Program-made: the position numbers and the translations under genes
Assembly: GCF_000400465.1 (NCBI RefSeq)
Contig: NW_008806286.1
Span: 203,865 to 235,864, forward strand
Reading direction: 5' to 3'
Source of the DNA: Wallemia ichthyophaga EXF-994
Lineage: Eukaryota; Fungi; Basidiomycota
DNA length: 32,000 bases
Shown: piece after piece, positions 3,582 to 30,737 of the stretch
Layout of the letters: every line of letters starts with the position of its first letter
Numbering within the stretch: the first letter of the stretch is position 1
The notes under the pieces: generated by a model
The model's input: only the letters and a program-made list of their open reading frames with translations
Database searches by the model: none
Told to the model about the DNA's origin: nothing

Positions 3582-3611
3582 CGTTATATGGTTATTTACA
3601 GCCACCGTACA

Positions 3612-4331
3612 ATGAACTTTTGGGAGTCCACCCAGCTAAATAAAATAATAAATAAATCTGAATTGAACAAAATAAATAAATTAGATAAGACAGTGCTACA
3701 GGGAGATTATTATAAGCTAGAGATTTATGCAATAAACACGCTTTATAAGTTTGGCAAGAAGATGACCAATAGGCAACGGGTGTTAAGTACAGCCGCAGTG
3801 TATTTGAAGAGGTTTTATCTGGAAAACAATTACTTAGAAACTGATTTGAATTTGATTATAATAACATGCTTATACTTATCAAGCAAGGTAGAGGAGTTAC
3901 CTATTTCGATACGCGTACTATCTGCAGAGTCAAATAAGTACTTTAAGATGGAATATAGCCAGCAATCAATCGGTAAAATGGAATTTAATCTTATAAACGA
4001 TTTAGATTGCCAGCTGATAGTACATCACCCCTTAATTAAGCAGTTTAATATTGAAGACAGTATAAAATCTTTAAGTCATTATATACTCAACGATATCTAC
4101 AAGACGAACATAATTCTACAATATCAGCCATACAACATTACAATCTCAATCATTATATTCGCTTACTCGATTCAATCCAAATTAAACCAGCCAATTCAGC
4201 TGCTTCGTGATCTAAACTGCGATTTAAGCGTGGTGGATGAAATTATAAAGCAGATATATAACTTCTATAGCACGCTACCAAATGTCGTTGACGATGAAAT
4301 TAAATTGTTATACTTAAATTCTCACTTGTAA
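3612..4331 (+). CDS. SSN8: Cyclin C (Mediator kinase module)
   Basis: Starts MNFWESTQ (cyclin C-type N-terminus) at ATG 3612, with cyclin box RQRVLSTAAVYLKRFY...TCLYLSSKVEE and MEFNLINDLDCQLIVHHP. The ORF-track start at 3468 overlaps MIX14 and is not the real start. Confidence 0.85.
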   Translation: MNFWESTQLNKIINKSELNKINKLDKTVLQGDYYKLEIYAINTLYKFGKKMTNRQRVLSTAAVYLKRFYLENNYLETDLNLIIITCLYLSSKVEELPISIRVLSAESNKYFKMEYSQQSIGKMEFNLINDLDCQLIVHHPLIKQFNIEDSIKSLSHYILNDIYKTNIILQYQPYNITISIIIFAYSIQSKLNQPIQLLRDLNCDLSVVDEIIKQIYNFYSTLPNVVDDEIKLLYLNSHL

Positions 4332-9741: not shown

Positions 9742-11452
9742 TCATGCCTGTTCATTCCCGACTTCATGCTTGACTTCATGTCCCCCAGACTGAGAATCGT
9801 TGTTTACTTTTTCGGTTGTTGGGTTTGAATGAACCCCAAAGTTTTGAATTGAATGTTCACCTTGAAGCAACGCTGGAACATCAGCAGTGAGAACGTCATA
9901 AAGATCAGACTCTGGTTCTCCCAGTTCAGCCAAATCCATACCCATTATTTCGTCATCATCGTCTGCTCTGAACTGACATCCTGGAATGAGGTTGATGAGG
10001 AATAGAAGGATGTAAGTCATAACGAATGAGTACGCAATAACAGTAACTGTGTCAGCGAGCTGGTAGCCTAACTGAACAAAGTGACCATCGAGCCTTCGCA
10101 ATGTTAGCAGAAATTCATTAGAAAAGTCAAACTCACCATCCACCGTCAATGGGGTCTGATCCATCGAAACTTGCAACACTCGATTGAGCAAAGATTGCGG
10201 TGAGGATGTTGCCGCATATACCAGCAACAGCTAGTCAAAATTAAGTAAATTCTTTTCAAATTATTCCATATATACTCACCGTGAGCACTGAAAATATCCA
10301 ATGCGTCGTCAATGCGCACGAGGTCTTTCAGCTTAGTTCCGAAGTTGCTTGCTAATGCGCCAATGAAACCAAAGAGGAATGATGCAGGAGTTCCAACATA
10401 GCCCGAGGCAGGTGTAATGCAAACCAAACCAGAAATAGCACCAGAGCAGAAACCAACGACTGAAATTTTTCTTTCAAGCCTGTAGTCGAGTAAAACCCAA
10501 GTGAGACCACCCATTGATGCAGCTGTGTTTGTGACAATACATGCTTGAGCTGCACGGAGGTTTGCGCCAAATGCAGATCCACCGTTGAAGCCAAACCATC
10601 CAATCCAAAGAAAAACAGTACCTAGAAAGACAAGGACAGGGGAGTGTGGTCTGAATGCGATTTGATTTGTGCCATATCCTCTTCTCTTGCCAACAAAAAG
10701 TGAAATTGCGAGGGCAGCAACACCAGCGTTGATGTGAACAGGAGAACCACCGGCGAAATCCAGTGATCCCAAAACAGCCATCCAACCATCTGAATTCCAG
10801 GTCCAGTGAGCTATTGGATTGTATACAATGATCGTCCAACACAAGATGAAGAGCATTGAAGGAAGTAATCTGCCTCTTTCTGCGAGCGCTCCAAGAGCAA
10901 TAACAATAGTGATACACGCAAAAGTACCTTGGTACCAAGCGTGAACGAGCATAGGTAAGTTTGATTGATCCTGATCTAAAATATCTTTGAAACCACCAAA
11001 AGACTGTAGGTCACCAATGTAACCGCCGTGAGAGTTTCCAAAAGTTAAGCTGTAGCCCATGCAGACCCATTCCAAGGAGACAACTGCGATACCGATCAAA
11101 GACATAAAAAGGAGGTGCATTGCGTTTTTTCTGCGGGTAAGACCGGCATAGAAGAGGCCAAGACCAGGTATCATTAGCCAGACCTAGCAGAGGTTTAGTG
11201 AGAGAGCCTGGAAGCAGGAAGATTACTGACAAGGAATGTGGAAGTGAGCTGCCATGCAATATCGCCCTGACTGTATACCTGTGGATTACCGGAAGACATT
11301 GGTAAGTTGGCTAATCAGTTGATAAGAGGGATGGATGTAGATTGAATAGAATACTCACGGTCTGGAAAAGCGACCATGTCCTGAAAGATATCAGCGTGGT
11401 TTACATAAGGAAAATTGAGGACTTACAGAGGTCGTTGGTGAAACTGAACCAT
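9742..11452 (-). CDS. AMT: Ammonium transporter, Amt/Mep family; 6 exons
   Basis: GDIAWQLTSTFLVWLMIPGLGLFYAG, DFAGGSPVH, WIGWFGFNGGS, LVCITPASG and DDALDIFSAH. ATG at 11452; introns 11381-11426, 11279-11358 and 11184-11230, plus two more near 10230-10280 and 10095-10140. Both pore histidines are present (twin-His, Mep2-like). Confidence 0.95.
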
Positions 11453-11535
11453 CTTGCTGGAGAGCGCCATATAAAATGTTAACCATAATGTTTCTTGGAT
11501 GAAGAAGGGGCAAGAGCTCTCAAATATAAAGACTT

Positions 11536-11880: not shown

Positions 11881-12568
11881 TACTAAGACCGCCTAAACTG
11901 CAAAGATGTATATTGAGTAAGGTAGAATAATATTTTAAATTAAAATATTCGAACTATGTCATCATCACGGCTCCAACTCAAATCAACTCTTTTTCCCTAC
12001 TAGATCATCCTTAAAAATGTCAGCAATTGCTCAATTAGTTGAAGTAAGTAGATTAAATCTTATTGCTCCCTTTTAATCAAATTTCGCAGAAAACAATCGC
12101 AGAGAACGTTATCGCTGTATTCTCTAAGGCCTATTGTGTGAGCCTATTTAGTCTTAATTTATGAGACTTATTTACATGTTACAGCCATTCTGTACTCGCA
12201 CTAAGAGCTTAATATCAACACTCCCAGTTAAGAAGGAAGATGTGGCTATTTTAGAGTTAGTTTATTGCTTATGAATCGAGGATATCATAACTGAAGGTCA
12301 CAGGTTAGACCAAATGTCCAATGGCTCAGATATACAAGATTACCTTCACAAGAAGACTAATCAGGTTGGTTAATGGTCAGGTTATGTCATCAAACTCTAA
12401 CAACCTCAAAAGAGATCTGTTCCAAACGTTTTCGTTAAACAGCAGCGTAAGTTCAGTAGTCGGACCACATATTTTGACTTATATTTCCACTATAGACATC
12501 GGTGGTAACGACGACTTCCATGCTGCTCACTCCGCAGGAAAGATTCAAAAGTTATTAGAGTAAATCGT

Positions 12569-12948: not shown

Positions 12949-13553
12949 TTGAACCAACTGTTAATTCCAATCATTGGTTGTCTCTTTTTTCTTCAACCGC
13001 TTTGCCCTTGCCATTCTATTCACTCAGAACAAAATAACAACACATCAGTATTCCAAATTCCATCTCAAAATGCGGTAGACGAATTTCAAGGACTACATAG
13101 CAATGCTTGCATAATTGTTGATATTTATCAATACTACCCTATTTATGAATCCGTTTCTGATGTCCTTCGTTCGTCAGTGGAACGAATCAATCCGATTGAT
13201 CAAGGGTGTACAGCTCTAAAATTTCCCAAACACTTTAAAAACAACTTGAGTTGATTCCTATCATTTGCTTGAGGGGCTAATCAATGAGGGGGTTGAGTAG
13301 CAGCTTTTCTAAGCGTGTAACGCCATATCAAGATTGTATCAATGCTCTAAAGTCTATTACGAAATACCTGGTTCCTGCAATACGTATTTCTGCTGAGATT
13401 GCAAGATACCACAAAACTCCCAAAACATTTAGTGGAAATCAGGGCTCTTGGGTTATATCGAGTTCTGAAAACTATGTGGAAGTGATGATCCGGCACTACT
13501 CTTGGGCACGCAATAAAGGAGATACGGCAGATTTCACCTGTATTGACAGCTAG
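12949..13553 (+). pseudogene. Possible broken gene for a small secreted protein, overlapping the left edge of the inverted repeat
   Basis: Two same-strand ORFs in different frames (12949-13254 and 13284-13553). The first has a signal-peptide-like LLIPIIGCLFFL stretch but starts at TTG after an in-frame stop. No family recognised. Confidence 0.2.
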
Positions 13554-16500
13554 AATAATTTGAAATTCACACGTTTCAAGCATTTTTAAATTAAAGCTTC
13601 TAAGATGTATCTTGCATGTTAAGACACGTTGCGTCCACGGGTGACTTAATTTGGGTTCTTGGATAAGTATCAGTGGAAGCCCTCGCCTATCACCTCTCAA
13701 CAATAAATTTTGTAAGATAAACTCGGCTCAGACCAACTCTCCAATTTAGATTTCGAATCTGGTTGATAATAAGAAAAAAATATCGTAAGTAAAACACTGA
13801 GGGCAGAGATGAAGTTCGAAATCTGAGTAAAACCTTAGAGGCTGTAATTTTTTTACGTCTTAAATAACGGTTAGTAATGCCGGATAAAAACTAAAAACCC
13901 TGTCCTGTAATTATTTCCAAATAATTCAAGAATCATGAGATGCTTTACAGTTTTTTCTCATAATGATCGCCTTCGAAACATTTAGAAGATCAACCACATC
14001 AGAGCGATATCGCTCTTTCCTTTTGTCTGGTACCTATTTTGACCCTATGAAGTATGAATCATTATGTATGCATTTAGTTTCTGAATTTCCAGGAGGTTTT
14101 GGCACGACGAGTTCAGAACCAAAAGAGTGCATATAACTTGAATGATCGAAATCGATAATTATGGCAAATACTCACTGGCAAAGTTAGGATAAACCAGTCT
14201 ACTTATTGCTAAGAGAGTAAATCGACTACACCTAACCCGCTAAACAAGTAAAAGGAGTTATCTTTGTAGATATATCAAAATCCCCGAAAAGGATAGGATA
14301 GGGTATGCTCAAAAGTGACCGGATTGGAGTGCCAATTGGGCCACTTGAATTCAATTGTGTCAAGATGGCAGACAATGAACATAAAGACTGACCTTGGCCA
14401 TTAAGTGTAGGGTGTCATTCGGTTGTTCAGATGAGTGGAGGTGGAACTGAAGTGAGAAAGACATAGCGTTCGTGGTATGAGAAAGCCCATAATTTTGCTA
14501 TATTAATTTTTTCAATTATGCTTTCCCGTCCTCATCTCTATTATTACAACATCCTTAATGTTGTTTTGTTCCACTTGTACATTTCGTCTGAACTATGAAA
14601 GTTGGAATGCACCTACTGTTGCAAATGTGTGAATTAATTTAGCATGTTGATTACTTTCTAAACTATACAGTTCGTCATAAAGTTTTAAGTATAAAGTTGA
14701 AATGAAATTAACCTTTTGAAAATCATCGTCTAGAAGTTGAACTGAGGCTCCTGAAAACAGTCAGCTCTAGTGAAATGATTAGGAACAGTATTCCTAAACT
14801 CGAAACCTTTTATCGTCACTTTATGAAGACGTCACGCGATGTTTCCGCCAAGTATCCGCCAAGTATCCGCCCACTGATCTAAAAAGGTACGAACGAAGTA
14901 TTTGTCTACGTATCGTATCTGTGGTTCCTTATAACTCATAAAAGCTCAGTCTTATCATATGCTGATGCTTAAACCACATACCCTTCAAGTAAAGTCTGAC
15001 GCGGATGAATTGAGGCTAGCTGTGGCTAATATGATGATGAAATAGTATTTACAACTTAAGGCAAGCAGGATCAGAGATACGAATTCAGATTCGAAGAGAA
15101 ATAATATTTATAACAAGCTCTGCTTGACTCTGGGAACACGAGTTGCAACGAAGGCCTTCGAGGGTAACATTTTGATGTTTTCGTGTCGATCTAAGCGCAT
15201 GTTTACAAGATTATGAGAGGCCAGCAAGCCGCAATAGCCCCCAAACATTAATCGGAAAGGCTGAAATGAAAAGTGGACAAAAAATGAAACTTTTTTGGAG
15301 CCCAGAAGTCTAATAATTTAAAGCACATCATTAACTGTTCATCGCAGTTTACCCACGAGGACTCATAATGCCAAAATGCGTGCACTAGGTTAAGGTAAAG
15401 TTACCCGATTATTCATCTGTTCGCCTTTTATCATTATCGCGATAACTATGCGAAAATTAGAGTCGCAATCGACATCGTCTTCTATTCTGCCAAAACGCGT
15501 ACACTAGGTAACTTTAACCTTAGGAGCAATTGAAGGTATATCCGAACAGACACTTATTTGGCTGTATCGTATCGTCTTCTTAGATCCAAGAATCACTCTT
15601 CACTTAACAGAATCGTACTTCAACATGCTTGACCCGAGCTCTAGAAAATGTTGAGGAAAGATGCATTGATTCTCATGCTGAGTAATGTAGGCTTTTGTTA
15701 AGCTTAGTTTAATAGGTATACGGCTTTGTTGTCAACTTTTCCGCTTCGCTGATACTTACTCATCATCGTAAGGGGGTAATGGTACCAACTTTAGAAAACG
15801 GCCATGATCACATGTCATTAATGTATATGATTGACAGGCTAGATTTCTTATCTAAACTTAGCAAGTCACTCGTACATGTCGCAGCTAAGCTAATACGAAA
15901 AAGTGGTTTAAGACACATTAGGCTTTAACGCATGTGTTAGAGCAATTTCATCGTAGCTAAAACATCATTGTCAATATGACATCGCAATTATTTGAGTTAG
16001 ATCACGAAATAACTTTATCTTTCCAGCAGAAAAAGCTCACATATTGCGAGTAGCGGGATGAACATAAGATAAAAGTAGAAGCACAACTATCAAACATTAA
16101 ATATCACTTGACCACACCAGCAATTATGGGTAATACCTCTCTTAGATTTGAAACCTTGCCGAATGGGGCGTCATTCAATCATTTCTCCCAGGACAATCTT
16201 TATCGCTTACTTGACCTCATCGAATTTAGCAAATGGTCAGGGTAGTCAAGAGTAATTTCGAGAATTACTCATAAAAACCTATTGGGTTGGAAAGTAGTGA
16301 ACATCAAAATTGTTGAACGAGTAGCTTTATAGTGTGGCCCATCTATAATTACGATCTCATTACTTGCAGTAGATCTCAAGTGCGTCACGCTATCAACGTT
16401 AGAGAATGTCACACTTACATAACTGAAGCGCTCTATATCATTTTGTAAGTGGCTTAGCGCGCTAGATGCTAACCTCGTCAATATTATTGATGAAGTTGGC

Positions 16501-16888
16501 ATATGTGACATCGTTCTACTGACAATTATGCATTTGGCTCAATGCTAAGAAAACAAAGTGCTTATCTATACTCAAGAGAGAGTATACAATTTACTGAGAT
16601 TTCCGTTGCAGGCAATCGTTTGTTAAGATATTCATTTTAAATGGAAACTGTTACGAATTGATCTAAATTTGACGCTAAGAGTTAAACTGCACTAAATATT
16701 AGGGCAAGAGAGAATGAAATAGAGCTAACATCCTTGACCTGTGCTTGTCACACTAGTGAGACAAAGTCCGAGATAAACTTCTTACTCAAATGAGCTACTT
16801 CACTTAACTGTTGGCGACCCAAATCATACTTGTATTACATTGATGAAACTCCAAATCTATCAAAACATAACTGATAGAGCCCTACAAG
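13422..16888 (+). repeat. Left arm of a 3,467-bp inverted repeat
   Basis: Reverse complement of 18040-21506; paired coordinates sum to 34928 throughout. Blocks near 13.4, 13.8, 14.2, 14.9, 15.1, 15.9, 16.6 and 16.8 kb were identical on spot check. Three mismatches were seen in the innermost 23 bp. Confidence 0.98.
14844..14871 (+). repeat. Short tandem repeat (TCCGCCAAGTA) x2.5 in the IR arm; mirror copy at 20057-20084
   Basis: Sequence tccgccaagta tccgccaagta tccgcc is directly visible. Confidence 0.9.
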
Positions 16889-18039
16889 GCTAACAATTTA
16901 TCAGTATGTTAAATAATAATTATTTCCAAGCGGAAGACACGAGGTACTGCATAATCCGTGATTGGCGAAACAAACTGCTTCGAACATTTCTTTTTCGCTA
17001 TAAAAAAGTCATCATGACACGCTCAGAAAAAGTATTTAAAGGCTCTTCAAGAAATAAGAACTATTGTTTAGTTCCAACTTCAAAAGTCAAAACTGGGTTT
17101 TTTTCTACTTACATATCTATAAAAGCCGTCAAATAAGTAATTCTTCTTGGGCGCTTTACCTACCTTGTCGAAAAAAAAAATACTCATTCGCCTGTTTGAT
17201 TTGTTGGGATGTATTTCATTTGAATTGCCTTTATCGGTCTATTAAAAACTGTTTGATCGAGTGAGGTGAGAAACCCGTTGTGTAACCAATGTGAGAAAAA
17301 CACAAAATTTATGTCGGTCGGAGATAAAAACGATGAAAGTACTATATGCTACAGTTATGACACAAGCATGAATGGCGATTTGACTTCATAATTCAACCTA
17401 AACTTCCTTAGATGATTGACAAAAACGTCGTGATAACCTCCTTCAAGACTATTACCCCCTACTACAAGTCCTGATATACCTTTAGATTATTATTTTTATC
17501 GTTTATAATATCCTACTTTATTTAGATCTCACAAACTATGAAAACGTAATGATTTTTTCAAAGTAAATTTCATTCTTTGAGAAGAACAATTTTCTCGAAA
17601 GCGTTAGAAGTGTAATTATGAAATGAAGTTAGTGTTTTTCTTTTTTTTCGCCATGGTTAGCTTTGGTCGTAAAATATGTCTCCCAGATGTGAAATTCATT
17701 GTCGATAACATGATTTCTTAATAATTCATACAACTTTAAAGGAGGTTGATTTGGGCACTCTAGATTTTTTTACCTTTAAAGTCCTAAAGTTTGAACGTTT
17801 ACTTCGGTACTCAACTGAATGCTTCTTTTTTTTTTCTTGCTCTTCTCTCGTTTTAATTTAGATAGGTCTTTCAGAGGTTAAACATTTCGATTGATAAAAT
17901 CCTAGACTTAATTTTTTTTAGTTCACGTTTATCATTATGATTTGTAATAGTTGGTTTATAGTGAAATAATAGTAATTACTTGACTTCAAAATTCAAAGAT
18001 TCATCATTGTACAATCCAGAAAAATTCAAAGTTGTAAAA
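16889..18039. other. Unique AT-rich central core between the IR arms
   Basis: 1,151 bp with A10 and T-rich homopolymer runs; about 32% GC by hand count over 16921-18000, with several 60-bp lines at 22-23%; only short uninformative ORFs. Confidence 0.85.
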
Positions 18040-21000
18040 CTTGTAGGGCTCCAACAGTTATATTTTGATAGATTTGGAGTTTCATCAATGTAATACAAGT
18101 ATGATTTGGGTCGCCAACAGTTAAGTGAAGTAGCTCATTTGAGTAAGAAGTTTATCTCGGACTTTGTCTCACTAGTGTGACAAGCACAGGTCAAGGATGT
18201 TAGCTCTATTTCATTCTCTCTTGCCCTAATATTTAGTGCAGTTTAACTCTTAGCGTCAAATTTAGATCAATTCGTAACAGTTTCCATTTAAAATGAATAT
18301 CTTAACAAACGATTGCCTGCAACGGAAATCTCAGTAAATTGTATACTCTCTCTTGAGTATAGATAAGCACTTTGTTTTCTTAGCATTGAGCCAAATGCAT
18401 AATTGTCAGTAGAACGATGTCACATATGCCAACTTCATCAATAATATTGACGAGGTTAGCATCTAGCGCGCTAAGCCACTTACAAAATGATATAGAGCGC
18501 TTCAGTTATGTAAGTGTGACATTCTCTAACGTTGATAGCGTGACGCACTTGAGATCTACTGCAAGTAATGAGATCGTAATTATAGATGGGCCACACTATA
18601 AAGCTACTCGTTCAACAATTTTGATGTTCACTACTTTCCAACCCAATAGGTTTTTATGAGTAATTCTCGAAATTACTCTTGACTACCCTGACCATTTGCT
18701 AAATTCGATGAGGTCAAGTAAGCGATAAAGATTGTCCTGGGAGAAATGATTGAATGACGCCCCATTCGGCAAGGTTTCAAATCTAAGAGAGGTATTACCC
18801 ATAATTGCTGGTGTGGTCAAGTGATATTTAATGTTTGATAGTTGTGCTTCTACTTTTATCTTATGTTCATCCCGCTACTCGCAATATGTGAGCTTTTTCT
18901 GCTGGAAAGATAAAGTTATTTCGTGATCTAACTCAAATAATTGCGATGTCATATTGACAATGATGTTTTAGCTACGATGAAATTGCTCTAACACATGCGT
19001 TAAAGCCTAATGTGTCTTAAACCACTTTTTCGTATTAGCTTAGCTGCGACATGTACGAGTGACTTGCTAAGTTTAGATAAGAAATCTAGCCTGTCAATCA
19101 TATACATTAATGACATGTGATCATGGCCGTTTTCTAAAGTTGGTACCATTACCCCCTTACGATGATGAGTAAGTATCAGCGAAGCGGAAAAGTTGACAAC
19201 AAAGCCGTATACCTATTAAACTAAGCTTAACAAAAGCCTACATTACTCAGCATGAGAATCAATGCATCTTTCCTCAACATTTTCTAGAGCTCGGGTCAAG
19301 CATGTTGAAGTACGATTCTGTTAAGTGAAGAGTGATTCTTGGATCTAAGAAGACGATACGATACAGCCAAATAAGTGTCTGTTCGGATATACCTTCAATT
19401 GCTCCTAAGGTTAAAGTTACCTAGTGTACGCGTTTTGGCAGAATAGAAGACGATGTCGATTGCGACTCTAATTTTCGCATAGTTATCGCGATAATGATAA
19501 AAGGCGAACAGATGAATAATCGGGTAACTTTACCTTAACCTAGTGCACGCATTTTGGCATTATGAGTCCTCGTGGGTAAACTGCGATGAACAGTTAATGA
19601 TGTGCTTTAAATTATTAGACTTCTGGGCTCCAAAAAAGTTTCATTTTTTGTCCACTTTTCATTTCAGCCTTTCCGATTAATGTTTGGGGGCTATTGCGGC
19701 TTGCTGGCCTCTCATAATCTTGTAAACATGCGCTTAGATCGACACGAAAACATCAAAATGTTACCCTCGAAGGCCTTCGTTGCAACTCGTGTTCCCAGAG
19801 TCAAGCAGAGCTTGTTATAAATATTATTTCTCTTCGAATCTGAATTCGTATCTCTGATCCTGCTTGCCTTAAGTTGTAAATACTATTTCATCATCATATT
19901 AGCCACAGCTAGCCTCAATTCATCCGCGTCAGACTTTACTTGAAGGGTATGTGGTTTAAGCATCAGCATATGATAAGACTGAGCTTTTATGAGTTATAAG
20001 GAACCACAGATACGATACGTAGACAAATACTTCGTTCGTACCTTTTTAGATCAGTGGGCGGATACTTGGCGGATACTTGGCGGAAACATCGCGTGACGTC
20101 TTCATAAAGTGACGATAAAAGGTTTCGAGTTTAGGAATACTGTTCCTAATCATTTCACTAGAGCTGACTGTTTTCAGGAGCCTCAGTTCAACTTCTAGAC
20201 GATGATTTTCAAAAGGTTAATTTCATTTCAACTTTATACTTAAAACTTTATGACGAACTGTATAGTTTAGAAAGTAATCAACATGCTAAATTAATTCACA
20301 CATTTGCAACAGTAGGTGCATTCCAACTTTCATAGTTCAGACGAAATGTACAAGTGGAACAAAACAACATTAAGGATGTTGTAATAATAGAGATGAGGAC
20401 GGGAAAGCATAATTGAAAAAATTAATATAGCAAAATTATGGGCTTTCTCATACCACGAACGCTATGTCTTTCTCACTTCAGTTCCACCTCCACTCATCTG
20501 AACAACCGAATGACACCCTACACTTAATGGCCAAGGTCAGTCTTTATGTTCATTGTCTGCCATCTTGACACAATTGAATTCAAGTGGCCCAATTGGCACT
20601 CCAATCCGGTCACTTTTGAGCATACCCTATCCTATCCTTTTCGGGGATTTTGATATATCTACAAAGATAACTCCTTTTACTTGTTTAGCGGGTTAGGTGT
20701 AGTCGATTTACTCTCTTAGCAATAAGTAGACTGGTTTATCCTAACTTTGCCAGTGAGTATTTGCCATAATTATCGATTTCGATCATTCAAGTTATATGCA
20801 CTCTTTTGGTTCTGAACTCGTCGTGCCAAAACCTCCTGGAAATTCAGAAACTAAATGCATACATAATGATTCATACTTCATAGGGTCAAAATAGGTACCA
20901 GACAAAAGGAAAGAGCGATATCGCTCTGATGTGGTTGATCTTCTAAATGTTTCGAAGGCGATCATTATGAGAAAAAACTGTAAAGCATCTCATGATTCTT

Positions 21001-21506
21001 GAATTATTTGGAAATAATTACAGGACAGGGTTTTTAGTTTTTATCCGGCATTACTAACCGTTATTTAAGACGTAAAAAAATTACAGCCTCTAAGGTTTTA
21101 CTCAGATTTCGAACTTCATCTCTGCCCTCAGTGTTTTACTTACGATATTTTTTTCTTATTATCAACCAGATTCGAAATCTAAATTGGAGAGTTGGTCTGA
21201 GCCGAGTTTATCTTACAAAATTTATTGTTGAGAGGTGATAGGCGAGGGCTTCCACTGATACTTATCCAAGAACCCAAATTAAGTCACCCGTGGACGCAAC
21301 GTGTCTTAACATGCAAGATACATCTTAGAAGCTTTAATTTAAAAATGCTTGAAACGTGTGAATTTCAAATTATTCTAGCTGTCAATACAGGTGAAATCTG
21401 CCGTATCTCCTTTATTGCGTGCCCAAGAGTAGTGCCGGATCATCACTTCCACATAGTTTTCAGAACTCGATATAACCCAAGAGCCCTGATTTCCACTAAA
21501 TGTTTT
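18040..21506 (-). repeat. Right arm of the 3,467-bp inverted repeat
   Basis: Reverse complement of 13422-16888. Mirrored ORFs 16269-16511(-)/18417-18659(+) are identical, and 13347-13703(-)/21225-21524(+) are identical up to the repeat edge. Confidence 0.98.
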
Positions 21507-21928
21507 ACTGCTCAATCCTTGTAACCTTGATATGTTGCCGAAGTTTTAAAGAATGTTCCAAATTTTCGCACTCGTGAGCAAATCTAATGACTTACCTAAA
21601 CTTTCTCGGTCACTTGCGAGTGTCTTCGCGGCTTTATAGCTCTGCTTCAATAGAAGCTTGCGGCCAGGCAGATGGGCCGGAGTTATTTAACGCGTCCATC
21701 GAATACGTCATCAAAGACATCTATTCAGGCTGATCGGTTAGGCTGACTTTGTGTAACGCCAACGTGATTACAAAATGTAGGCGGGATTGTTTATCGGTAT
21801 CCCTATCCAAGGTTGCACTAGACTCATAACGATCCACTAGCGAAAACATTGTTCTTTGTTATACTTCGCTTCCTGAATAATAATCGCAACAAAAGGCACC
21901 TTAGCGGAGCCTTGATCCATTCGAACGG

Positions 21929-23851
21929 ATGTACTATAGTACTAAGGTATGTTGAACATCACCTATATGCTCTACAAACTGAAACAAAATAACTAGAGTA
22001 TCAACAATGCCAAATCAAGAGCAAACACGAGCACGACGTTGGCGGATGAAATTGAGGACAAATTTGTCACGGAAAGAGATCACAATGGAGTTAATAACGG
22101 CACTCAAGAGCCGCAATCTTATTTACCGATGATTCTTGCTGAAAATATTCCATCTTACTACGAGGGCTATGGATATGAGCACATCAACAGTACAGAAACT
22201 GGAACATACTTTTCTTCACCACCAGCAAGCAGTTATCAATTTCAACAGCCTAGCATGCAAACTCATTACGAGGACGATCAAGCAACGACACGACTGGTTA
22301 GTCACGGTCCCATAGATGCAGCACTGCTTCAATACAATGACAAAAGTAATTTTGAGATCTCTCCACAAAATACTGTTGCTCTTATGGACCTTCATGGAAT
22401 TAATAATTATCAATACCCATCGCCATCACCATGTAAGTTCGCACCGAAATTAAAAGAGCTTGACGACCTGACACCACAAAGACACCAACAGGTGTGATGT
22501 GCACCAGTATCCGGCGCATTATTGTACGTGTCAGCTAAGTCGAGAAAGTTTCTTCTGAACACACAGCCTAAGGGAGTCAGACAAATGATTTAAGTCAACA
22601 GGATCTTTCAGGTGAGTCTTTGATCGTAGATCAGCGCATTATTTGAACAGTTTAGCCTATGCGATAAATGACGCTGCCTTATGTGATTATACAGGTGTAG
22701 ATCACACCTTGGCTGACGATGGAATATATAGACATATGAAACCACCTCCACAAATCTCACAATCACCTCAGTACTACTTCCAGCCTTTTTTCAATCAAGC
22801 GTACCCTGCTAGCGGTTCACAAAGAACCCCATCGATTCCATTCCGCATCTCGACTGAAACAGAGTCACCCAAAGGGGGTGTTTATAGTGCGTGAAAACTA
22901 ATCACTGTATTATAAGCTAACAAGGGCACTAGCAGTGAACAATGCTAAGATGCATGCTTCGTCATCGATTCCACAAGAGTCAGCTTCAAGAAACAACGAT
23001 GCTACTGCTAAGCCAAGCGCGACTTCATCCAGCAGTATACGTAGCGCTGAATTAAGAACAGCTTCGAGATCAACAGATTCTGTTACATCTAATTCACCAA
23101 CTTCAACCTCAGCTACAAACCTATCAACGGCCAATTCAAAGAACGGCAGGAGATCGAGAAAGTGTCCCTTTCCTGGCTGCAGTAAGGTATTCGGCTATGA
23201 AATTGACATATAAATGAGCTGACATGTTTTTAGAAGTTTGTTCGTGACTCGACACTGGATGTAAGTAGAGAATCACGATAGCGTCGTTGTTGCTGACTCA
23301 TGTGTTGAAGAGTCACTACAAATCCCACACAGTCCCGCGCCCGTACATTTGTAGTGTGTGTTCAAGGTCATTTGCACGAAAGCACGACGCAGAAAGACAT
23401 TTCCGCATGCACAATGATGATAGGTAATTACTAAAGAGCTTTTCGCAGTTGAAGTTGACCACCAAATCAGACCCTACTGCTGTCCGAACTGTGAAGCGAC
23501 ATTTCCCCGCTCAGACGCACTCAGGAGGTGAGTACGCGGTTCTAAGAAAGCAAAGCTGAATGCTGGGCATGTAGACATTGGAATTCACAGCCAAAGTGCG
23601 CTCAGAAGGCAAAAGAAGGTGCCAAAGTGGAAGAGGACGGTAAATCTAGTCAGCTTGCAAAGGGACAATCACCAAAGGCGAGGAGAATTGCAGCTAAGAA
23701 GATGTTAGATATTAGTTCAGATGAGAACGAAAACGAAGAGAGAAGTGAAGGTGATGGTGTTGGAATTGGAACGGAAAGTACACTTCCGAAAGCGTCAACG
23801 TCTTCACCACAGAAGAGATCAGCGAAGAAACGCAGAATAGAAAAGCAGTGA
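21929..23851 (+). CDS. Zinc-finger transcription factor with two C2H2 fingers and one C2HC finger; multi-exon
   Basis: Spliced fingers CPFPGCSKKFVRDSTLDSHYKSH, CSVCSRSFARKHDAERHFRMH and CPNCEATFPRSDALRRHWNSQPKC. Likely start ATG 21929 (MYYSTK|SINN, intron 21947-21996). C-terminal basic NLS-like KKRR. Confidence 0.8.
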
Positions 23852-24094
23852 TGTATGCTTGAACGATTCAGCGCAGAATAGAAAATCAATGACAATTTCT
23901 TGAATAACTACTCAACACACGGCGACCAATGACGACTATTGACAAGTCGAATTTCTTGGACAAAACATAACCTTCACGACGCTTGTATAAATTCTTGTAT
24001 TTTACAAATAATTGTTTGTACTATTGAAGTTGGGTGGGAATAGCGATACCTTGTAACTCTGTTAACGACGGCGAGGATTGTGATTTGTGAAAAT

Positions 24095-25025
24095 ATGTAA
24101 GCGGTTATCGGAAGGCATTGTTCATGTGTTTAAGCTACAACAGGTCTAGCGAAGAAATCAGCCAGTACGAATTGCAGCTTGAGCAAGTCAAGGAGACGCT
24201 TACAGCTGATCCGACAAACGCAGATCTACTTGGACTTAAGGATGAATTAATGAACATTATCGATCTACTTAAAGCAGCTTCGGCTCCTGCTCCATCCGCA
24301 TCCACCTCATCTCAAGCAGAATCATCACGCTCTAGCACTGCAATTGAGCCCGAGGCTGTTTCGTTTAAGGCAGGTGAAGACGTATTGGCAAAATATAAAG
24401 ATGGTAAATTCTACCCAGCGACAATCAAAGCCGTTTCAGGCATACATCCAAAGATAGTATACACGATCAACTTCAGAGGATATCAGGGTACAGAGCAAGT
24501 ACAGCCGAACATGATAAAAGCTATGGATGCCCATACAAAAATAAATATGACTAACAAGCGACAAAGAGATTCACAGAAATCCTTGACGTCGATTGAGGAT
24601 GATAAGGAGAAAGACAAAAAGCGTAAGAAGAACGAGAAGAAGGCGGTAGTTAGAGAGCAGAAGAATAGTGAAATGAGTAGGCCTTTGGATAATTTGGTGG
24701 TCTACCTGACTAACGCATTTTAGATGATAAGCAGAACAACTGGCAAAAGTTCGCGAAGAAGGCAAACAAGAAAGGTATACACATTGCTGGATCTGAAGGC
24801 AAAAGCATGTGAGTCGAAAGGGCTGTTTTCATTCAGATTTTGATAGAATTTCTTCTAGATTTAAAACACCCGACAATCCATACGGCAGAGGTGTGTTTGG
24901 ATTATGCGGTGTTCTAATCTAACAAACCCGATTTAGTTGGTGTTACAGGCTCAGGTAAACCGATGACCGAGCAAAAAACTGTAAGAGATAAGCACATATT
25001 CAACCAAAGCTTAGAAGATCAATGA
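24095..25025 (+). CDS. SPF30: Tudor-domain splicing factor SPF30/SMNDC1; multi-exon
   Basis: N-terminal EEISQYELQLEQVKETLTADPTNADLLGLKDEL, Tudor FKAGEDVLAKYKDGKFYPATI, C-terminal NNWQKFAKK and FKTPDNPYGRVGVTGSGKPMT. Start codon modelled as AT|G across intron 24097-24143; stop TGA 25023-25025. Confidence 0.88.
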
Positions 25026-25371
25026 ATTTGTATCGTGTACATTTGCATCTGCATCTACATTAGATCTCTCAGTTCGTATCATACAGTGTCACAATTTTAC
25101 CATGCTTCAGATTTGCCGTGTGCGTAATGCTTGCGATATACTTACAAACGAGCTTTGGTAAGCGGAATCTCAAAACGTCATTCTTCATGACGTAATCGGC
25201 CTTGGAAGGTGTGTGTAACAAATATCACGAATATCAGGAAATGTTCTTTGAAATGCATGTAGATGTAAATTACCCTGTATTCAATAGCAATATGGGCGTT
25301 GAAAATTGGTCTGGTACCCAACTTACTCCAAGATTCTTAATCTTCCTCAATTACGACCACGTAATTTAAAA

Positions 25372-27226
25372 ATGGGAGCAGAATACTTTATTGGTATCGA
25401 TGTCGGTACAGGATCAGCAAGATCAGCTTTATTATCAACCAGCGGTGATATTATTGCTGAATCAACTTACAACACACATACTTGGAGAGACGCGAACGAC
25501 GCCAACATCTTTGAGCAATCATCTGCCAACATCTGGGGTAATATCAGTCAATCTGTCAGGGATGTCGTCAAACAAGCTCAAATTCCAAAAGAAGCTGTAA
25601 AGGGTATTGCTTTTGATGCTACATGCTCATTGGCAGTTACCGACCGAGACGGTAACCCAATAACTGTATCCAATAATGATAAGCTTGGTAAATCCGGCGA
25701 AAGAAACATTATCTTATGGGCAGATCATAGAGCTGAAAAGGAAGCCAACCTGATCAACTCAACAGGTGCAATGCCTTTACAATTCGTCGGTGGTACCGTA
25801 AGCTTGGAAATGGAGATACCAAAGACTTTATGGCTCAAAAACCACATGGATCCTGAAGATTTTAGAAGGTGTATGTTCTTTGATTTACCTGATTGGTTGT
25901 CATACAGAGCAACTCGCTCATTAGCAAGATCTAACAACTCACTTGGTTCTAAATTCACTTACGTAACACCTTCAATTTCTGGTGCCTATCCATCTGGATG
26001 GGATCCAAAGTTTTTGGAGCAGATTGGCCTCGGTGACCTCGTTCATCAAGACTTTATTCCAATTGGTGGTGCACCAAACAAGAACGGTCTTGTCTTAACT
26101 GGTGGATTACCTGTTGGCAAGGGTTTGACAAAGGAAGCTGCCGAGGAGTTGGGCTTAGCTGAAGGCACAGCAGTTGGAAGCTCAGTTATCGATGCCTATG
26201 CTGGATGGATTGGTACAGTTGCTGCCAAGTCGGCTAAAAAGGGCGAAGATTTACCAAAAGACGCTGTCGCCTTTGAGGAGTGTGCACACAGATTAGCTGC
26301 TTGTGCAGGTACATCCACATGTCACATTGTACAAGTGAGTGATATATTTCGATTAAAGCACCGTCTAATCAAGCTACACAAAGTCACCAGAAGGTGTATT
26401 CGTTCAAGGTGTCTGGGGACCTTACAAAAATGCAGTCTTCCCAGGCTGGTGGATGAATGAGGGAGGCCAGTCATCCACGGGACAACTTATAGATTTTATT
26501 TTGAAAACACACGTCGCTTATCCCGAATTAGAGAAGGTTGCAAATGAAAGAAAGACAAACATCTTTACCATACTCGGAGAATTATTGGAGAAAGCAAGGG
26601 TAGAAGAAGGTGTAGAGACGGTTAACCAAATAAACAGAAACATGCACTTCTACCCAGATTTGCACGGTAATAGATCACCATTGGCTGACTCAAGAATGAG
26701 AGGTATGATAACTGGGTTGGGATTAGACGGAACGTTAGGAGACTTGGCTAGAAAGTTTCAACTTACACTTGAAGCTATTGCGTTACAAACTCGTCACATA
26801 GTCGATCAAATGAATGAATCAGGACACAAGGTGAACTCAATCTATATGTCAGGTGGACAAGTAAAGAATAGGGCATTAATGCAATTAATTGCGGACGTTT
26901 GTCAAATGCCATTAATCTTACCTGCATCAGCATCTGGACCAGTCGTTGCTGGATGTGCAATCCTTGGAAGGTATGCATATGAATTATCGCAAATGAAGGA
27001 TTTCGATGAGATCGCTAAGCAACAGCAAGCGGAGCAAACTGGAGAGAATAACAAGAGAAGGTTATGGCAATTGATGACGGAAATGACAAAGCCTGGTGAA
27101 ACAATCGAACCAAACTGTCCTAAGAAGGATAGCTTGTTGCTTGGTGCAAAATACAAAATCTTCAGAGAATCGATTGACATTCAAAGAAGATGGAGAAAAG
27201 AGGTTGAAGATGCTATTAAAGAGTGA
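25372..27226 (+). CDS. FGGY-family pentulose/ribulose kinase (YDR109C-like); 2 exons
   Basis: YFIGIDVGTGSAR, GIAFDATCSL, ILWADHRA, FFDLPDWLSY, GTSTCH, EGGQSSTGQL, PDLHGNRSP and YMSGGQVKN. Intron 26335-26383. Confidence 0.93.
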
Positions 27227-27286
27227 AGGAAAAGAGTGATAAAAGTGCAATGTATATTGATAAATTGAAATGAAATAAATTGAAAG

Positions 27287-28022
27287 TTATGAAGATTCGA
27301 AGTCCTTATAATAGATGATTGCGTCGTCGTAGTATTCATTACCTTGAGTATCGAGGAGTCTACCCGCCTTTGGAACGAGACCTGCCCTTGTAAAACCAAG
27401 ACCATCCCAAATGCGTGAGCTAGCGACATTTGATTGATAAACAAGGTTGAATATGGCTGATGAGATGGGTTAAGTGATGTCTTGCTGAGTATGTTTGAGC
27501 AAACTTACAGCCTTTGTATCCCAATTTAGGACCGTAGTGTAAGTAGCTTTTTCCTAGTGTAGATCCTAATCCAAGACCTCTTTTGTGAAGATTGACAATG
27601 AAACCGGCATTGCATATCTGAATAATTGATTGAGTAAATTGCGGTGAGGTATAGCATAAAGTACACACATGATTAGATCTACCGACATAGTTTGGTTTGA
27701 CGTAGTAGCATCCACCTAAAACATGATCCCATTCATTATCGCTTATTTGGTTGATCGGCTTATCGGTAAGTAACCCGATGAAAAGGTCAGCAGTGAAAAA
27801 GTAGGAAGTAAATTGTTCTTGAGTCATAGGCTGTTCAATTGGGTATGTGCGACCTTGATCGATTATGCTATTAAACAACTGATGCAGCCTGCTTAAGAGC
27901 TGTTTTGGCGCGATTGAGGGATCATTTAAGTGATGTATGTGTAATTTCAATTGACCTGGTAAGTTCCAGGTGGTGGAATCTAACTTTGTAGATGAATTTC
28001 TTGATTCTGCTGGGTACACCAT
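27287..28022 (-). CDS. MPR1: GNAT N-acetyltransferase, Mpr1 (L-azetidine-2-carboxylate acetyltransferase)-like; at least 3 exons
   Basis: QGRTYPIE, YYVKPNYVGRSNH|ICNAGFIV, RGLGLG..LGKSYL, GYKGS|IFNLVY..N.AS.RIWDGLGF and DDAIIY; stop TAA 27287-27289. The start is uncertain (28022 or 28088). Confidence 0.8.
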
Positions 28023-28085
28023 CTGACAGTATGTTTTAAAGGTTAGTGAGGTTATCAGGGTAATAATAAGTTTAAATTTAGAGGA

Positions 28086-29464
28086 CATGTCTGGATAAAT
28101 CCCTACAAGCACGGTCAAGCTATCCGCACATTAGAAGTGCTACAGAACAGAATGCTCAGGAAGGCTCTGGGAGCAGTACAAACAACTCCATTATACATGC
28201 TCCACTTCGACACCGCAGTGTTGTCGTCAACCGAGAGGCTTCGCATGAGAAATGAATCTTACCTGTTGAGAACGCTCACTCGACCTAGCGATCACCCCGC
28301 ACACGTCATCACCGCAAGCATTCTGCGGAGGTTAAGGAAGAAGTTCGTCTCGCCCTTGAACGCAGTATTACTCGCCAAACCAATGCTCGAGGGCCTGAAG
28401 GAGATGGAAACCATAGTACCTCATCCTTTCGTGCCGTGGGTACCTGCAACACTAAGCTTTTCACATGCGAAGAATAAGGAACGAGCAAAAGCAGAGAATA
28501 CGTAATTATGCAATCAATACAATACGTCATGACCCTTCTACACAGATGGATCTCTGGCCGAGGGGCAAGTTGCGGCAGGCTATGCAGCTAAACTTCCACA
28601 CAGACGAGACTGGAATAGCTCATCTTACAAATGAGGTACTGACAGCCAATTCACAATCTACGAAGCAGAGATATTGGGAGTATATCTCGCTCTAGAATTG
28701 GTCGAAGAAGAGTTAATCCACACATCCCTACACCGCCAGTAGTCTCTATCCATAGCGACAGTCAGGCGGTTCTTTCGGCAATGGTTTAACTGCAAACAAC
28801 AAAAACAGGTCAATATTTGATAAAGCAAGTACTTGACAAAATCGATTGGATCAAACGAACAAAGAGAAAAAACCTAGTTGTCCAATTGGGCTGGATCCCA
28901 AGACATGTGGATATCTAAGTTAACGAACTAGCGGACAGAATCGCCAGCGAGGGAAGGACACGGTCAACCCACCAGACTATGTGGAGTGACCTGACACTCA
29001 AAGCTTCTTACTCAGCTATGCGACGCAGAATGCGCGAGCGGTATACAGCACCCCTAAAAGTAGAAGCCTCTATAATATCAGACATTAATGCCAACGCCGC
29101 AAAAAGTATCAGCTGGAAAGCTGACAGCAGCAAAAGAAAAACGGCCAGGGTACTCAACGAGATGCCTAGCCACCCAGCTACGCTCAGGGGATTTCTCCCA
29201 CGACCAAATCCTACCGTTTCCGTTTCCGTCTGATTGATTCACCTAAATGCAGTGCGCGTGGAACAAAGGACACCATCTCGCATAGAATTTTCATATGCAA
29301 AAGACATAATGGCCAGAATCACATTAAGAAGAAAGATTACCAAGATCGACATTCGGTTCACCTTAAGTCCAATACTCAGAAACGCACACTCTCTACAAGC
29401 CCTTTACGAGTTCTTCAAACCGCAATTGACTACATACCAAAGATACTTCGGTAGTTCGGCATAA
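28086..29464 (+). mobile_element. 5'-truncated, decayed non-LTR retrotransposon (LINE, Tad/I-like) fragment: RT thumb plus RNase H plus 3' region
   Basis: VW...LEVLQNRMLRKALGAVQTTP (post-RT region); RNase H motifs FYTDGS, IYEAEILG, IHSDSQA, WIPRH and NELADRIA; several in-frame stops and frameshifts. Confidence 0.88.
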
Positions 29465-29652
29465 GTGAGAACCACCAACAGATTAAAAATTACGACACAA
29501 GTCAAAAAATGCTTCAAGTAAATTCGGAACTCCCTTTGAATCCTCATGCTTTAAGAAGTATTATGGACGCAGTTTAAACATGTATCGTCTTGACAACATA
29601 TTCAGATTTAATCATCATAATAAAATATAATATAATTTAGTGTACAAATAAG

Positions 29653-30312
29653 CTATTGATCCATTGCGCTATCATCCTGTTCATCTTCATCATCTTGTTC
29701 CCACCAACTGACAATACCAAGACCTTGGCCATCGATTGAAGCAGTTAATCTATATGCTGTTGGTACGGCTTCCTCTTGATCATCAAGTTGCTTCTTTTTG
29801 GGTGTTGGATAGACGTTTTCAAAGTGCTCAGCTTCAACCCTGATTCTGATTTGTTCACCGATATCAATGTAAGCTCTTTGTTCAGGTGAAGAAGTGAATG
29901 GATCACCATCTTCCCAACCAGCGAGCCAAAAGAAGGTATTCTCAGCGCTATCGAATTCTGAAATTTCAGGTAACTGATTCTTAGGTATCCAGATGTCATC
30001 GAAGAAGTCTATAGATGCGATGATACCATGTTGATTTGTAGATTTAACTTTAGCAAGCAAGATTTCACCGATAAAAGGCCTAAAAACGAGTAAGTTGAAA
30101 GTAACTTTGTAGTATACGTTGCCATTAGAGTGCTGTAGGTAGCCTTGACTAGATTGAATGATAGAATGTAAAGAAATGGATAAACCGACATCTTGTAATA
30201 TTTTATTAGAATATTTAGAGTTAATGCTATCTCTAATAGCGATTGAAGGTTCTAAATTGAGATTTGAAGGGATAACAGGGATCGTGTCCTTGACTAGAGA
30301 TAAGATGAACAT
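29653..30312 (-). CDS. RPC25: RNA polymerase III subunit C25 (Rpb7-like)
   Basis: MFILSLVKD...INSKYSNKILQDVGL, VFRPFIGEIL, DFFDDIWIP and C-terminal DGQGLGIVSWW. ATG at 30312; intronless. Confidence 0.92.
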   Translation of the reverse strand: MFILSLVKDTIPVIPSNLNLEPSIAIRDSINSKYSNKILQDVGLSISLHSIIQSSQGYLQHSNGNVYYKVTFNLLVFRPFIGEILLAKVKSTNQHGIIASIDFFDDIWIPKNQLPEISEFDSAENTFFWLAGWEDGDPFTSSPEQRAYIDIGEQIRIRVEAEHFENVYPTPKKKQLDDQEEAVPTAYRLTASIDGQGLGIVSWWEQDDEDEQDDSAMDQ

Positions 30313-30323
30313 GGTAAGAGGAA

Positions 30324-30718: not shown

Positions 30719-30737
30719 CACGGTGAACTGACTTGAA

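Follow-up and report, generated by a model that had tools for sequence, protein, structure and literature searches.

A gene-free inverted repeat of 8 kb around a short AT-rich core is present in scaffold KE007236.1 of Wallemia ichthyophaga EXF-994, the source of the 32,000-nt stretch analyzed here (the window, to which all coordinates refer). Judged by analogy with better known fungal systems, this repeat most likely serves as the centromere of the chromosome that carries KE007236.1, and we treat it as a candidate compact regional centromere with a probability of roughly 0.5. The reading concerns one locus in W. ichthyophaga and draws on the geometry of the repeat, the behavior of its arms and the comparison of the locus among Wallemia species.

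Geometry, composition and gene content of the repeat

Base-by-base pairing of the two arms (i + j = 34928) gave a perfect run of 3,444 nt (13422-16865 versus 18063-21506), followed by 34 nt with 7 mismatches, after which matching falls to the random level. The outer edge of the arms is sharp and the inner edge is graded (Table 1). When the core was compared with itself (16900-18028), its halves had no mutual similarity. A unique core is found between two inverted copies of the repeat, and the contig ends of strain assemblies and of Logan assemblies agree with this. The outer limits 13422 and 21506, the pair sum of 34928 and the lack of indels, all proposed in an earlier sequence-only reading, were found to be correct by the repeat finder and the base-by-base pairing. 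That reading also described a unique core between inverted arms, which stands, although its sizes (3,467 bp for the arms and 1,151 bp for the core) are slightly off, 3,478 and 1,129 nt being found. It had further recognized a basidiomycete-like genome, and the source is indeed a basidiomycete (Basidiomycota, Wallemiomycetes).

Table 1. Features of the inverted repeat and its flanks, in window coordinates
Feature	Position	Strand	Remarks
Ammonium transporter gene, left flank	9742..11486	-	Pfam PF00909, gene call in contig L001, homologues
Glutaredoxin gene, 6 exons	12017..12563	+	gene call in contig L001 at 20032-20578, also read directly
Left arm of inverted repeat	13422..16899	.	3,478 nt (repeat finder); inner edge 16866-16899 decaying
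Unique AT-rich central core, proposed "mid" region	16900..18028	.	1,129 nt, 31.4% GC
Right arm of inverted repeat	18029..21506	.	3,478 nt (repeat finder); perfect over 18063-21506
C2H2 zinc-finger gene, 496 aa, right flank	21929..23851	+	gene call in contig L002 at 16462-18384
Tudor-domain gene, right flank, synteny anchor	24124..25025	+	
FGGY-family sugar kinase gene, right flank, synteny anchor	25372..27226	+	

The GC content rises from 31.4% in the core, where about 32% had been estimated beforehand, to 37.6% in the arms and 40.3% in the remainder of the window, the published mean of the W. ichthyophaga genome being 45.35%. The core is not the only GC minimum even inside the window, nor its sole low-GC kilobase, since the genic stretch from 30.0 to 31.7 kb is equally low. 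It also departs from the Malassezia type, a repeat-free AT-rich core of 3-5 kb at the GC minimum of its chromosome, being 1.1 kb long and flanked by repeats. The indices of RIP-like mutation bias were unremarkable in arms and core.

The repeat region is the sole long gene-free stretch of the window, whose genes are closely packed elsewhere. From 13728 to 21996 (8,269 nt) all open frames are shorter than 110 codons; the second longest stretch of this kind in the window measures 1,596 nt. The longest stop-free stretch in the repeat region has 102 codons, with stops occurring near the random rate. The Pfam scan, which took in the ten longest stop-free segments, the two frames with the fewest stops (with X at each stop) and only the longest segments of the other four frames, gave no match in the repeat region, and there was no signal of transposase or reverse transcriptase in the frames scanned. 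No tRNA genes were found in the repeat region and no Rfam match was obtained there, even at E 0.1. The claim that no recognizable gene is present is thus borne out by the ORF, Pfam, tRNA and Rfam tests. Two HMMER matches to the longest arm reading frame were discarded as spurious, being sums of many weak matches to translated tandem repeats. On the left, the last gene before the repeat is the glutaredoxin gene, followed by 858 nt of unique spacer; on the right, a 422-nt spacer precedes the zinc-finger gene, the first one after the repeat.

A segment lying between identical inverted repeats can invert, and a recombination-driven switch of the kind known from mating-type loci in Ogataea and Komagataella could be imagined here. 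We find this hardly probable, since the 1.1-kb spacer has no ORF longer than 80 codons and no domain match, which leaves no gene bracketed by the arms. The published candidate mating-type locus of W. ichthyophaga involves STE3, CAF1 and BAP31; these are absent among the window genes identified, and the window has no mating-type genes.

The region could also be a large non-autonomous DNA transposon of the foldback type, with very long terminal inverted repeats, or the degenerate remnant of a mobile element. Long inverted termini around a short middle without coding capacity correspond to the foldback plan, and the genome paper gives ~85 kb of DNA-transposon sequence for this species. We nevertheless consider a transposon quite improbable. 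There is no target-site duplication, as the left flank ends in ...AAAACTCCC and the right flank starts with ACTGCTCAA..., with no direct repeat between them, and neither a transposase nor another protein domain gave a signal in the frames tested. The arms are not built of subrepeats, the only one found being an 11-bp unit with 2.5 copies per arm, and no subrepeat arrays occur. Their 4-mer composition resembles local intergenic DNA (r = 0.81) more than coding DNA (r = 0.70). No second copy of the arm was found in ~590 kb of Wallemia loci, which is a tiny and biased sample. The position is fixed, the site being occupied in all the W. ichthyophaga strains examined, and it appears to be conserved across species, with unassemblable DNA at the same place in two others.

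Assembly support and concerted evolution of the arms

The reference assembly was made with SOAPdenovo (K=21) from 500-bp and 2-kb libraries, and the 3.4-kb arms were never spanned. Because these libraries are too short to span the arms, the perfect arm identity is partly that of one collapsed contig placed twice; for the same reason, the arm length and the joins between arms and core rest on a single short-read assembly. Such a data set, together with strain assemblies that are reference-guided, speaks for an assembly artefact, either as one repeat contig wrongly placed twice or as a false palindrome. The ends of other contigs make this very improbable. At least nine further assemblies (17 contigs read) terminate precisely at the two outer edges, and so do three Logan assemblies, each built automatically from the reads of public sequencing runs. 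Strain contigs stop 119 nt into each arm (L001 and L020 at 13540 on the left, L005-L009 at 21388 on the right), while Logan contigs stop 30 nt into the arms (L026 ends at 13451 on the left and L027 starts at 21477 on the right). In every strain and Logan assembly examined, the two flanks run into one and the same end of the arm, inverted relative to each other, and these contig ends support the inverted arrangement of the arms as well as the sharpness of their outer edges. Furthermore, the inner edges, which differ at 7 of 34 positions, join different ends of the core, something a collapsed false palindrome would not do, and the sequence is unique in both flanks and in the core.

Contigs reaching into the arms also revealed variants, carried in the right arm by L003 and L004. 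At arm position 22, a divergent lineage has A both in the right arm (L003, L004 and L027) and in the left arm (L026), whereas both arms of the reference have G; the left- and right-arm contigs of this lineage come from different samples. As one variant is common to both arms of the divergent lineage and the other base to both arms of the reference, the arms evolve in concert, which shows that they are homogenized by gene conversion. Their virtual identity is seen both in this common variant and in the 3,444-nt perfect run, the latter partly an assembly construct.

The same locus in other Wallemia species

The zinc-finger gene of the right flank is conserved in W. hederae, in W. mellicola and in a sister species (tblastx), and W. 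mellicola has a zf-C2H2 call at the homologous place. The Tudor protein of W. mellicola is 72% identical to that of W. ichthyophaga. Similarity to W. ichthyophaga ends at window position 21571 in the sister species and at ~21648 in W. mellicola, a homology cliff only 65-142 nt from the right edge of the repeat. Beyond it, the sister species and the W. mellicola reference scaffold have ~1-1.3 kb of AT-rich non-homologous DNA and then the contig or scaffold ends. The W. mellicola strain contigs with the right-flank gene are all ~99 kb long, as if broken at the same place. Searches of the repeat region against terminal stretches from three other species by blastn (word size 7) and nhmmer found similarity only in the right-flank promoter, and blastn of these terminal stretches against each other gave no similarity outside that promoter. 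As seen up to the contig ends, these comparisons show that the position of the right edge marks a homology cliff and an assembly break in both the sister species and W. mellicola.

In W. hederae, other genes adjoin the group of zinc-finger, Tudor and FGGY genes, without an AT-rich gap in between, and the glutaredoxin and ammonium-transporter flank lies at the start of the same contig. A single inversion of ~55 kb would explain this arrangement, and it appears to have a breakpoint at the junction between the repeat and the zinc-finger gene. Rearrangement breakpoints adjoining centromeres are common in fungi, as in Malassezia and Candida. The glutaredoxin gene of W. hederae is 1.5 kb from the contig end, where an 884-bp array of an 8-bp satellite is located; this end structure is a tandem satellite, not a demonstrated inverted repeat. 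A telomere was also considered for this array, but a satellite seems more likely, because the unit TTTRTGCA is rich in G on neither strand and its sequence changes all along the array.

Two other loci were of no help. The ammonium transporter of W. mellicola, the only gene its surroundings have in common with the window, was discarded as a left-flank anchor because 50 kb separate it from the Tudor gene on a shared contig. A homologue search with the FGGY kinase missed the full-length proteins of W. ichthyophaga and W. mellicola but led to the contig of the sister species and, through a cluster list, to a metagenomic Wallemia. In the latter, an RSN1-family gene adjoins the Tudor and FGGY genes, with neither the zinc-finger gene nor a gap, which shows another rearrangement there, uninformative about the repeat.

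A different origin of the structure would be a palindromic duplication of intergenic DNA with no role in chromosome segregation, whose arms gene conversion keeps identical and which might be a source of ncRNA or simply persist as a neutral relic. The repeat geometry, the concerted evolution of the arms, the lack of genes and the native-like composition fit such a duplication equally well. The comparison among species fits it less well: a neutral relic is not expected at the same position in a species as distant as W. mellicola, nor is it expected to combine complete sequence turnover with a coincident rearrangement breakpoint. In addition, the published W. ichthyophaga genome is 73.6% coding and has 1.67% of repeats, and at such a coding density 8 kb of gene-free DNA would be costly. 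We consider this duplication unlikely, although it keeps an appreciable probability.

A candidate centromere and its known counterparts

The centromere proposed in the sequence-only reading is partly supported by these results. The concerted arms, the lack of a target-site duplication, the non-homologous region that assemblies of W. mellicola and the sister species fail to cross at the same place and the W. hederae breakpoint are all in its favor. Characterized basidiomycete centromeres are either retrotransposon-rich, as in Cryptococcus, or short AT-rich cores, as in Malassezia. The centromere reading is weakened because these are of other types and because the core is no more AT-rich than the 30-31.7 kb stretch. 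If the analogy with Komagataella phaffii and with the imr-cc organization of Schizosaccharomyces pombe holds, CENP-A nucleosomes would occupy the core and extend along the arms, and the structure of the repeat, rather than its sequence, would contribute to defining or confining the kinetochore domain. The arms would be kept identical by recombining with each other, which may also flip the core.

We suggest, more tentatively and at somewhat less than even odds, that the arrangement of a core between inverted repeats is a native Wallemia centromere type, which would have arisen independently of those of Komagataella, Candida tropicalis and Schizosaccharomyces. Its position would predate the split of W. 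ichthyophaga and W. mellicola while its sequence would have been wholly replaced, and W. hederae would represent a centromere-adjacent inversion, possibly with a shift to the 8-bp satellite. The novelty asserted in the sequence-only reading held in our literature search, which gave no description of Wallemia centromeres nor of a centromere in any Wallemiomycete. Wallemiomycetes are an early-branching lineage within Agaricomycotina. If true, no inverted-repeat centromere would have preceded it in Basidiomycota, and the design would have originated independently a third or fourth time, this very compact form having re-evolved in a distant phylum, in a genome just as small. This would support the idea that the inverted repeat is in itself a way of defining a small centromere, rather than a peculiarity of yeasts that lost heterochromatin. 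The genus, with at least 4 species and more than 40 sequenced strains, would offer a system for the study of centromere turnover and centromere-linked rearrangement, and a centromere of 8 kb might serve as a building block of stable plasmids or artificial chromosomes for an extreme halophile.

Among known systems, Malassezia is comparable in its compact basidiomycete genome, the few-kb size of the candidate, the AT-rich core and the synteny breakpoints at the locus. Its centromeres, reportedly described by Sankaranarayanan et al. in 2020, are said to be AT-rich cores of 3-5 kb that contain a 12-bp motif and lack a flanking inverted repeat. In C. tropicalis, there is also a core between inverted repeats, of 3-6 kb, and the centromeres are alike across chromosomes. 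The imr-cc-imr domain of S. pombe resembles the W. ichthyophaga repeat in its unique core and in flanking inverted repeats homogenized within the chromosome, which in S. pombe are chromosome-specific, although its central domain has ~15 kb and is accompanied by tens of kb of outer repeats common to the chromosomes. The centromeres of S. pombe have tRNA-gene boundaries, whereas no tRNA genes and no outer repeat arrays were found in the W. ichthyophaga repeat region.

The centromeres of K. phaffii consist of 2.0-2.7 kb repeats around a 1-kb mid region, with G+C a few points below the genome mean (Coughlan et al. 2016, PMC5010909). With them the W. ichthyophaga repeat shares the few-kb inverted repeat, the unique core of ~1 kb, the near-identical arms, the lack of genes and a total of 6-8 kb (PMC5010909), as well as a base composition modestly under the genome mean; no conserved motif is known in K. 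phaffii. The arms are longer in W. ichthyophaga, at 3.5 kb versus 2.0-2.7 kb, and K. phaffii is an ascomycete yeast that lost H3K9me heterochromatin, while W. ichthyophaga belongs to another phylum. Cse4 binding, one centromere per chromosome and polymorphism of core orientation have been demonstrated in K. phaffii. With its 3.5 + 1.1 + 3.5 kb, the W. ichthyophaga candidate is closely similar to the K. phaffii centromeres in both size and geometry.

Geometry and assembly of the inverted repeat

The repeat finder returned a single large inverted repeat in the window, with arms of 3,478 nt each around a gap of 1,129 nt. When each position i is matched against 34928 - i, the arms pair perfectly and without interruption over 3,444 nt. 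Their outer edge is sharp, the pairing ending abruptly at 13421 / 21507, and at the inner edge 7 of 34 nt are mismatched after the perfect run, beyond which matching falls to random level. The sequence-only reading had the coordinates, the sum of 34928 and the absence of indels right, but its arm length was about 11 nt off and its core about 22 nt off. The arms have 37.6% GC and the core 31.4%, compared with 40.3% elsewhere in the window and a published mean of 45.35% for the W. ichthyophaga genome. A low-GC kilobase is not exclusive to the core, as 30.0-31.7 kb of the window is equally AT-rich. We found no subrepeat arrays in the arms beyond a single 11-bp unit present 2.5 times. The 4-mer composition of the arms correlates with local intergenic DNA (r = 0.81) more than with coding DNA (r = 0.70), and the CpG and RIP-type indices of arms and core are unremarkable.

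Features of the locus (window coordinates, except for the last row)
Feature	Position	Strand	Remark
Carbamoyl-phosphate synthase small chain	1986-3206		
ORF with Cyclin_N match	3468-4331	+	
Ammonium transporter	9742-11486	-	
Glutaredoxin	12017-12563	+	
Short ORF across left outer edge	13284-13553	+	89 codons
Short ORF across left outer edge	13347-13703	-	118 codons
Left arm	13422-16899		perfect match 13422-16865
Core	16900-18028		
Right arm	18029-21506		perfect match 18063-21506
Stretch without open frame of at least 110 codons	13728-21996		8,269 nt
C2H2 zinc-finger	21929-23851	+	
Tudor	24124-25025	+	
FGGY kinase	25372-27226	+	
Rpc25	29656-30312		
AT-rich segment	30321-32000		30-31% GC; runs past window end
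8-bp array (TTTRTGCA)	L025:1-884 = W. hederae SPNW01000010.1 1-884		884 bp, ~110 copies; contig end

Only 500-bp and 2-kb libraries went into the SOAPdenovo assembly (K = 21) of the reference, so a 3.4-kb arm is longer than any read pair can bridge and the perfect arm identity is partly that of one collapsed contig placed twice; arm length and arm-core joins are based on this assembly alone. The strain assemblies of Gostinčar et al. (2019), reference-guided and with 194-962 contigs each, are all broken at the repeat. Their left-flank contigs (L001, L020) end at 13540 and the right-flank contigs (L005-L009) at 21388, exactly 119 nt into the arm on either side, and the terminal 119-mers are mutual reverse complements. 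Logan contigs, built automatically from further public sequencing runs, reach 30 nt into the left (L026) and right (L027) arm. Since left and right contig ends match, both unique flanks lead into a single repeated sequence at the same end, the duplication being inverted and not direct. Inner edges that differ (7/34) and join different core ends would be absent from a falsely built palindrome, and we regard an assembly artefact as very improbable.

Both arms of the reference carry G at arm position 22, where more divergent strains carry A, in the right arm (L003, L004, L027) as in the left (L026); the flanks of these strains are 99.4-99.6% identical to the reference. The same variant in both arms points to one substitution copied into the other arm. 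The case for arms evolving in concert is strong but not airtight, left and right arms being taken from different samples. In L003, three further arm differences occur in 172 nt (2.3%, vs 0.57% in its flank), a small sample that hints at arms changing faster than the flank.

Gene content and mobile-element signals

The earlier reading of a compact, basidiomycete-like genome was correct, the source being Wallemia ichthyophaga. The Rpc25 protein is encoded in 17 contigs, including the EXF-994 reference scaffold KE007236.1 (337,453 bp), which matches the window at 100% identity from 19653 to 32000, a span that takes in part of the right arm. Scaffold position equals window position + 203,864, placing the repeat at 217,286-225,370. 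The carbamoyl-phosphate synthase small chain is identically encoded in GCA_004918415.1 (L001); along 13.2 kb this assembly shows 100% identity to the window and thus comes either from the reference strain, sequenced again, or from a near-clone. One paper took the assembly to represent the proteome of W. ichthyophaga, under the taxid of EXF-994.

The Cyclin_N match (E = 1.9e-12) lies where the strain annotations examined have no gene call, and is possibly a missed cyclin-like gene. The W. ichthyophaga reference has no gene call in the AT-rich segment at the window end, which shares 73% identity with a region of the sister species. Annotations of W. mellicola and the sister species place a COG2-domain gene (533-642 aa) at this spot, and the segment probably holds an unannotated COG2 gene. 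In several strain annotations (L003-L009), zinc-finger, Tudor and FGGY (24124-27226) are merged into single models of 1,011-1,194 aa; these are gene-model errors of the population assemblies, the reference annotation keeping them separate (496, 252 and 601 aa).

That the repeat holds no recognisable gene was borne out by the ORF, Pfam, tRNA and Rfam scans. Over one arm and the core, the longest stop-free stretch has 102 codons, and each of the six frames has 84-120 stops in 1,535 codons, where composition predicts about 107. The ten longest stop-free segments gave no Pfam match better than E = 0.09, and the two fewest-stop frames, run at full length with stops written as X, gave nothing at E 0.1 or better. 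The only two full-library HMMER matches to the 102-residue segment are translated tandem repeats, artefacts of summed weak matches. The tRNA scan of the repeat region found none, and no Rfam family reached its gathering score or E 0.1 there. The longest stretch without an open frame of at least 110 codons covers most of the repeat, the runner-up in the window having 1,596 nt. An invertible switch is a remote prospect, there being nothing to switch in the spacer. The two short ORFs straddle the left repeat boundary, so their right-arm counterparts differ at one end; they show no conservation in W. hederae and have no gene call in the assemblies examined.

The outer edges carry no direct repeat or target-site duplication (…AAAACTCCC before the left arm vs ACTGCTCAA… after the right arm), the Pfam scans gave no transposase or reverse-transcriptase signal in the repeat, and no further arm copy occurs in ~590 kb of Wallemia loci, a small and biased sample. 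A foldback-like element is improbable, lacking target-site duplication, coding capacity and subrepeats.

The locus in other Wallemia species

In a sister species (Logan run SRR25399871; 73-84% DNA identity), similarity to the window starts at 21571, 65 nt outside the repeat, and beyond it 1,050 nt unrelated to the W. ichthyophaga arms run to the contig end. In W. mellicola, whose Tudor protein is 72% identical, one strain contig (L022) has its start ~3.3 kb upstream of Tudor, the remaining strain contigs with this gene are all ~99.3 kb, as if breaking at one shared place, and the reference scaffold JH668246.1 ends just 363 nt past the L022 start. Similarity to W. ichthyophaga ends at window ~21648, and the terminal 1.5 kb has 31-36% GC. 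The ammonium transporter, which borders the repeat in W. ichthyophaga, sits in W. mellicola (L010-L019, L022; SPRE01000037.1 and relatives) ~50 kb into the contig of the right flank, its neighbours there being unrelated; the gene was relocated, or else the DNA around it was rearranged.

W. hederae, the published sister species of W. ichthyophaga, keeps zinc-finger, Tudor and FGGY as one block. Its upstream neighbours are WD40, CID and malate-synthase genes, the GC being normal and the sequence free of a gap. The same contig starts 1.5 kb beyond the glutaredoxin gene, which borders the inverted repeat in W. ichthyophaga; ammonium transporter, SHMT and CPSase then follow, ordered as in the left flank of W. 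ichthyophaga. At this contig end lies the 8-bp array (unit variants TTTATGCA / TTTGTGCA / TTTCTGCA), whose motif is absent from the window and all other loci compared; it may be a satellite, a centromeric repeat or an unusual chromosome end. One ~55 kb inversion, with one breakpoint at the junction of repeat and zinc-finger gene, would account for this order, and glutaredoxin would then stay beside whatever repeated structure W. hederae has.

A metagenomic Wallemia has an RSN1-family gene directly upstream of Tudor and FGGY and no zinc-finger gene, which is another rearrangement at the same spot. Its contigs (L029-L038, ENA and Logan) carry an FGGY C-terminal ORF 86% identical, and it recurs in many metagenome assemblies (43 index blocks). 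Judging from these alignments, the site appears to be an old boundary, with conserved genes on one side and fast-changing, non-genic, assembler-blocking DNA on the other, and rearrangement breakpoints seem to cluster at its edge. An inverted repeat may lie past the contig ends of the other species.

Comparison with known centromeres

A palindrome of non-centromeric nature fits everything directly shown, although it accounts poorly for the cross-species pattern, and we hold it to be possible but doubtful. A centromere is the most likely explanation, with a probability of about 0.5 for this single candidate locus, because of the features shared with the Komagataella phaffii centromere and of a position apparently conserved across species where the sequence is not. 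By analogy with K. phaffii and S. pombe, CENP-A chromatin would sit on the core and spread into the arms, and the repeat structure, not its sequence, would help to define the domain.

Our literature search found no paper linking Wallemia with centromeres or inverted repeats of such kind. As of 2016, inverted-repeat centromeres in fungi were known from K. phaffii, C. tropicalis and S. pombe only, and basidiomycete centromeres were described as typically heterochromatic (Coughlan et al. 2016, PMC5010909). If confirmed, this well-supported candidate, at one locus, would extend the known inverted-repeat architecture to a new phylum, probably with an independent origin. The closest match is the K. 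phaffii centromere, with "virtually identical" arms of 2.0-2.7 kb around a 1-kb mid region, gene-free, a few points under the genome mean in G+C, without a shared motif, and with arms that recombine in nature (PMC5010909). Like it, the Wallemia repeat is gene-free and mildly AT-biased, falls into the same size class, has the same geometry and shows homogenised arms.
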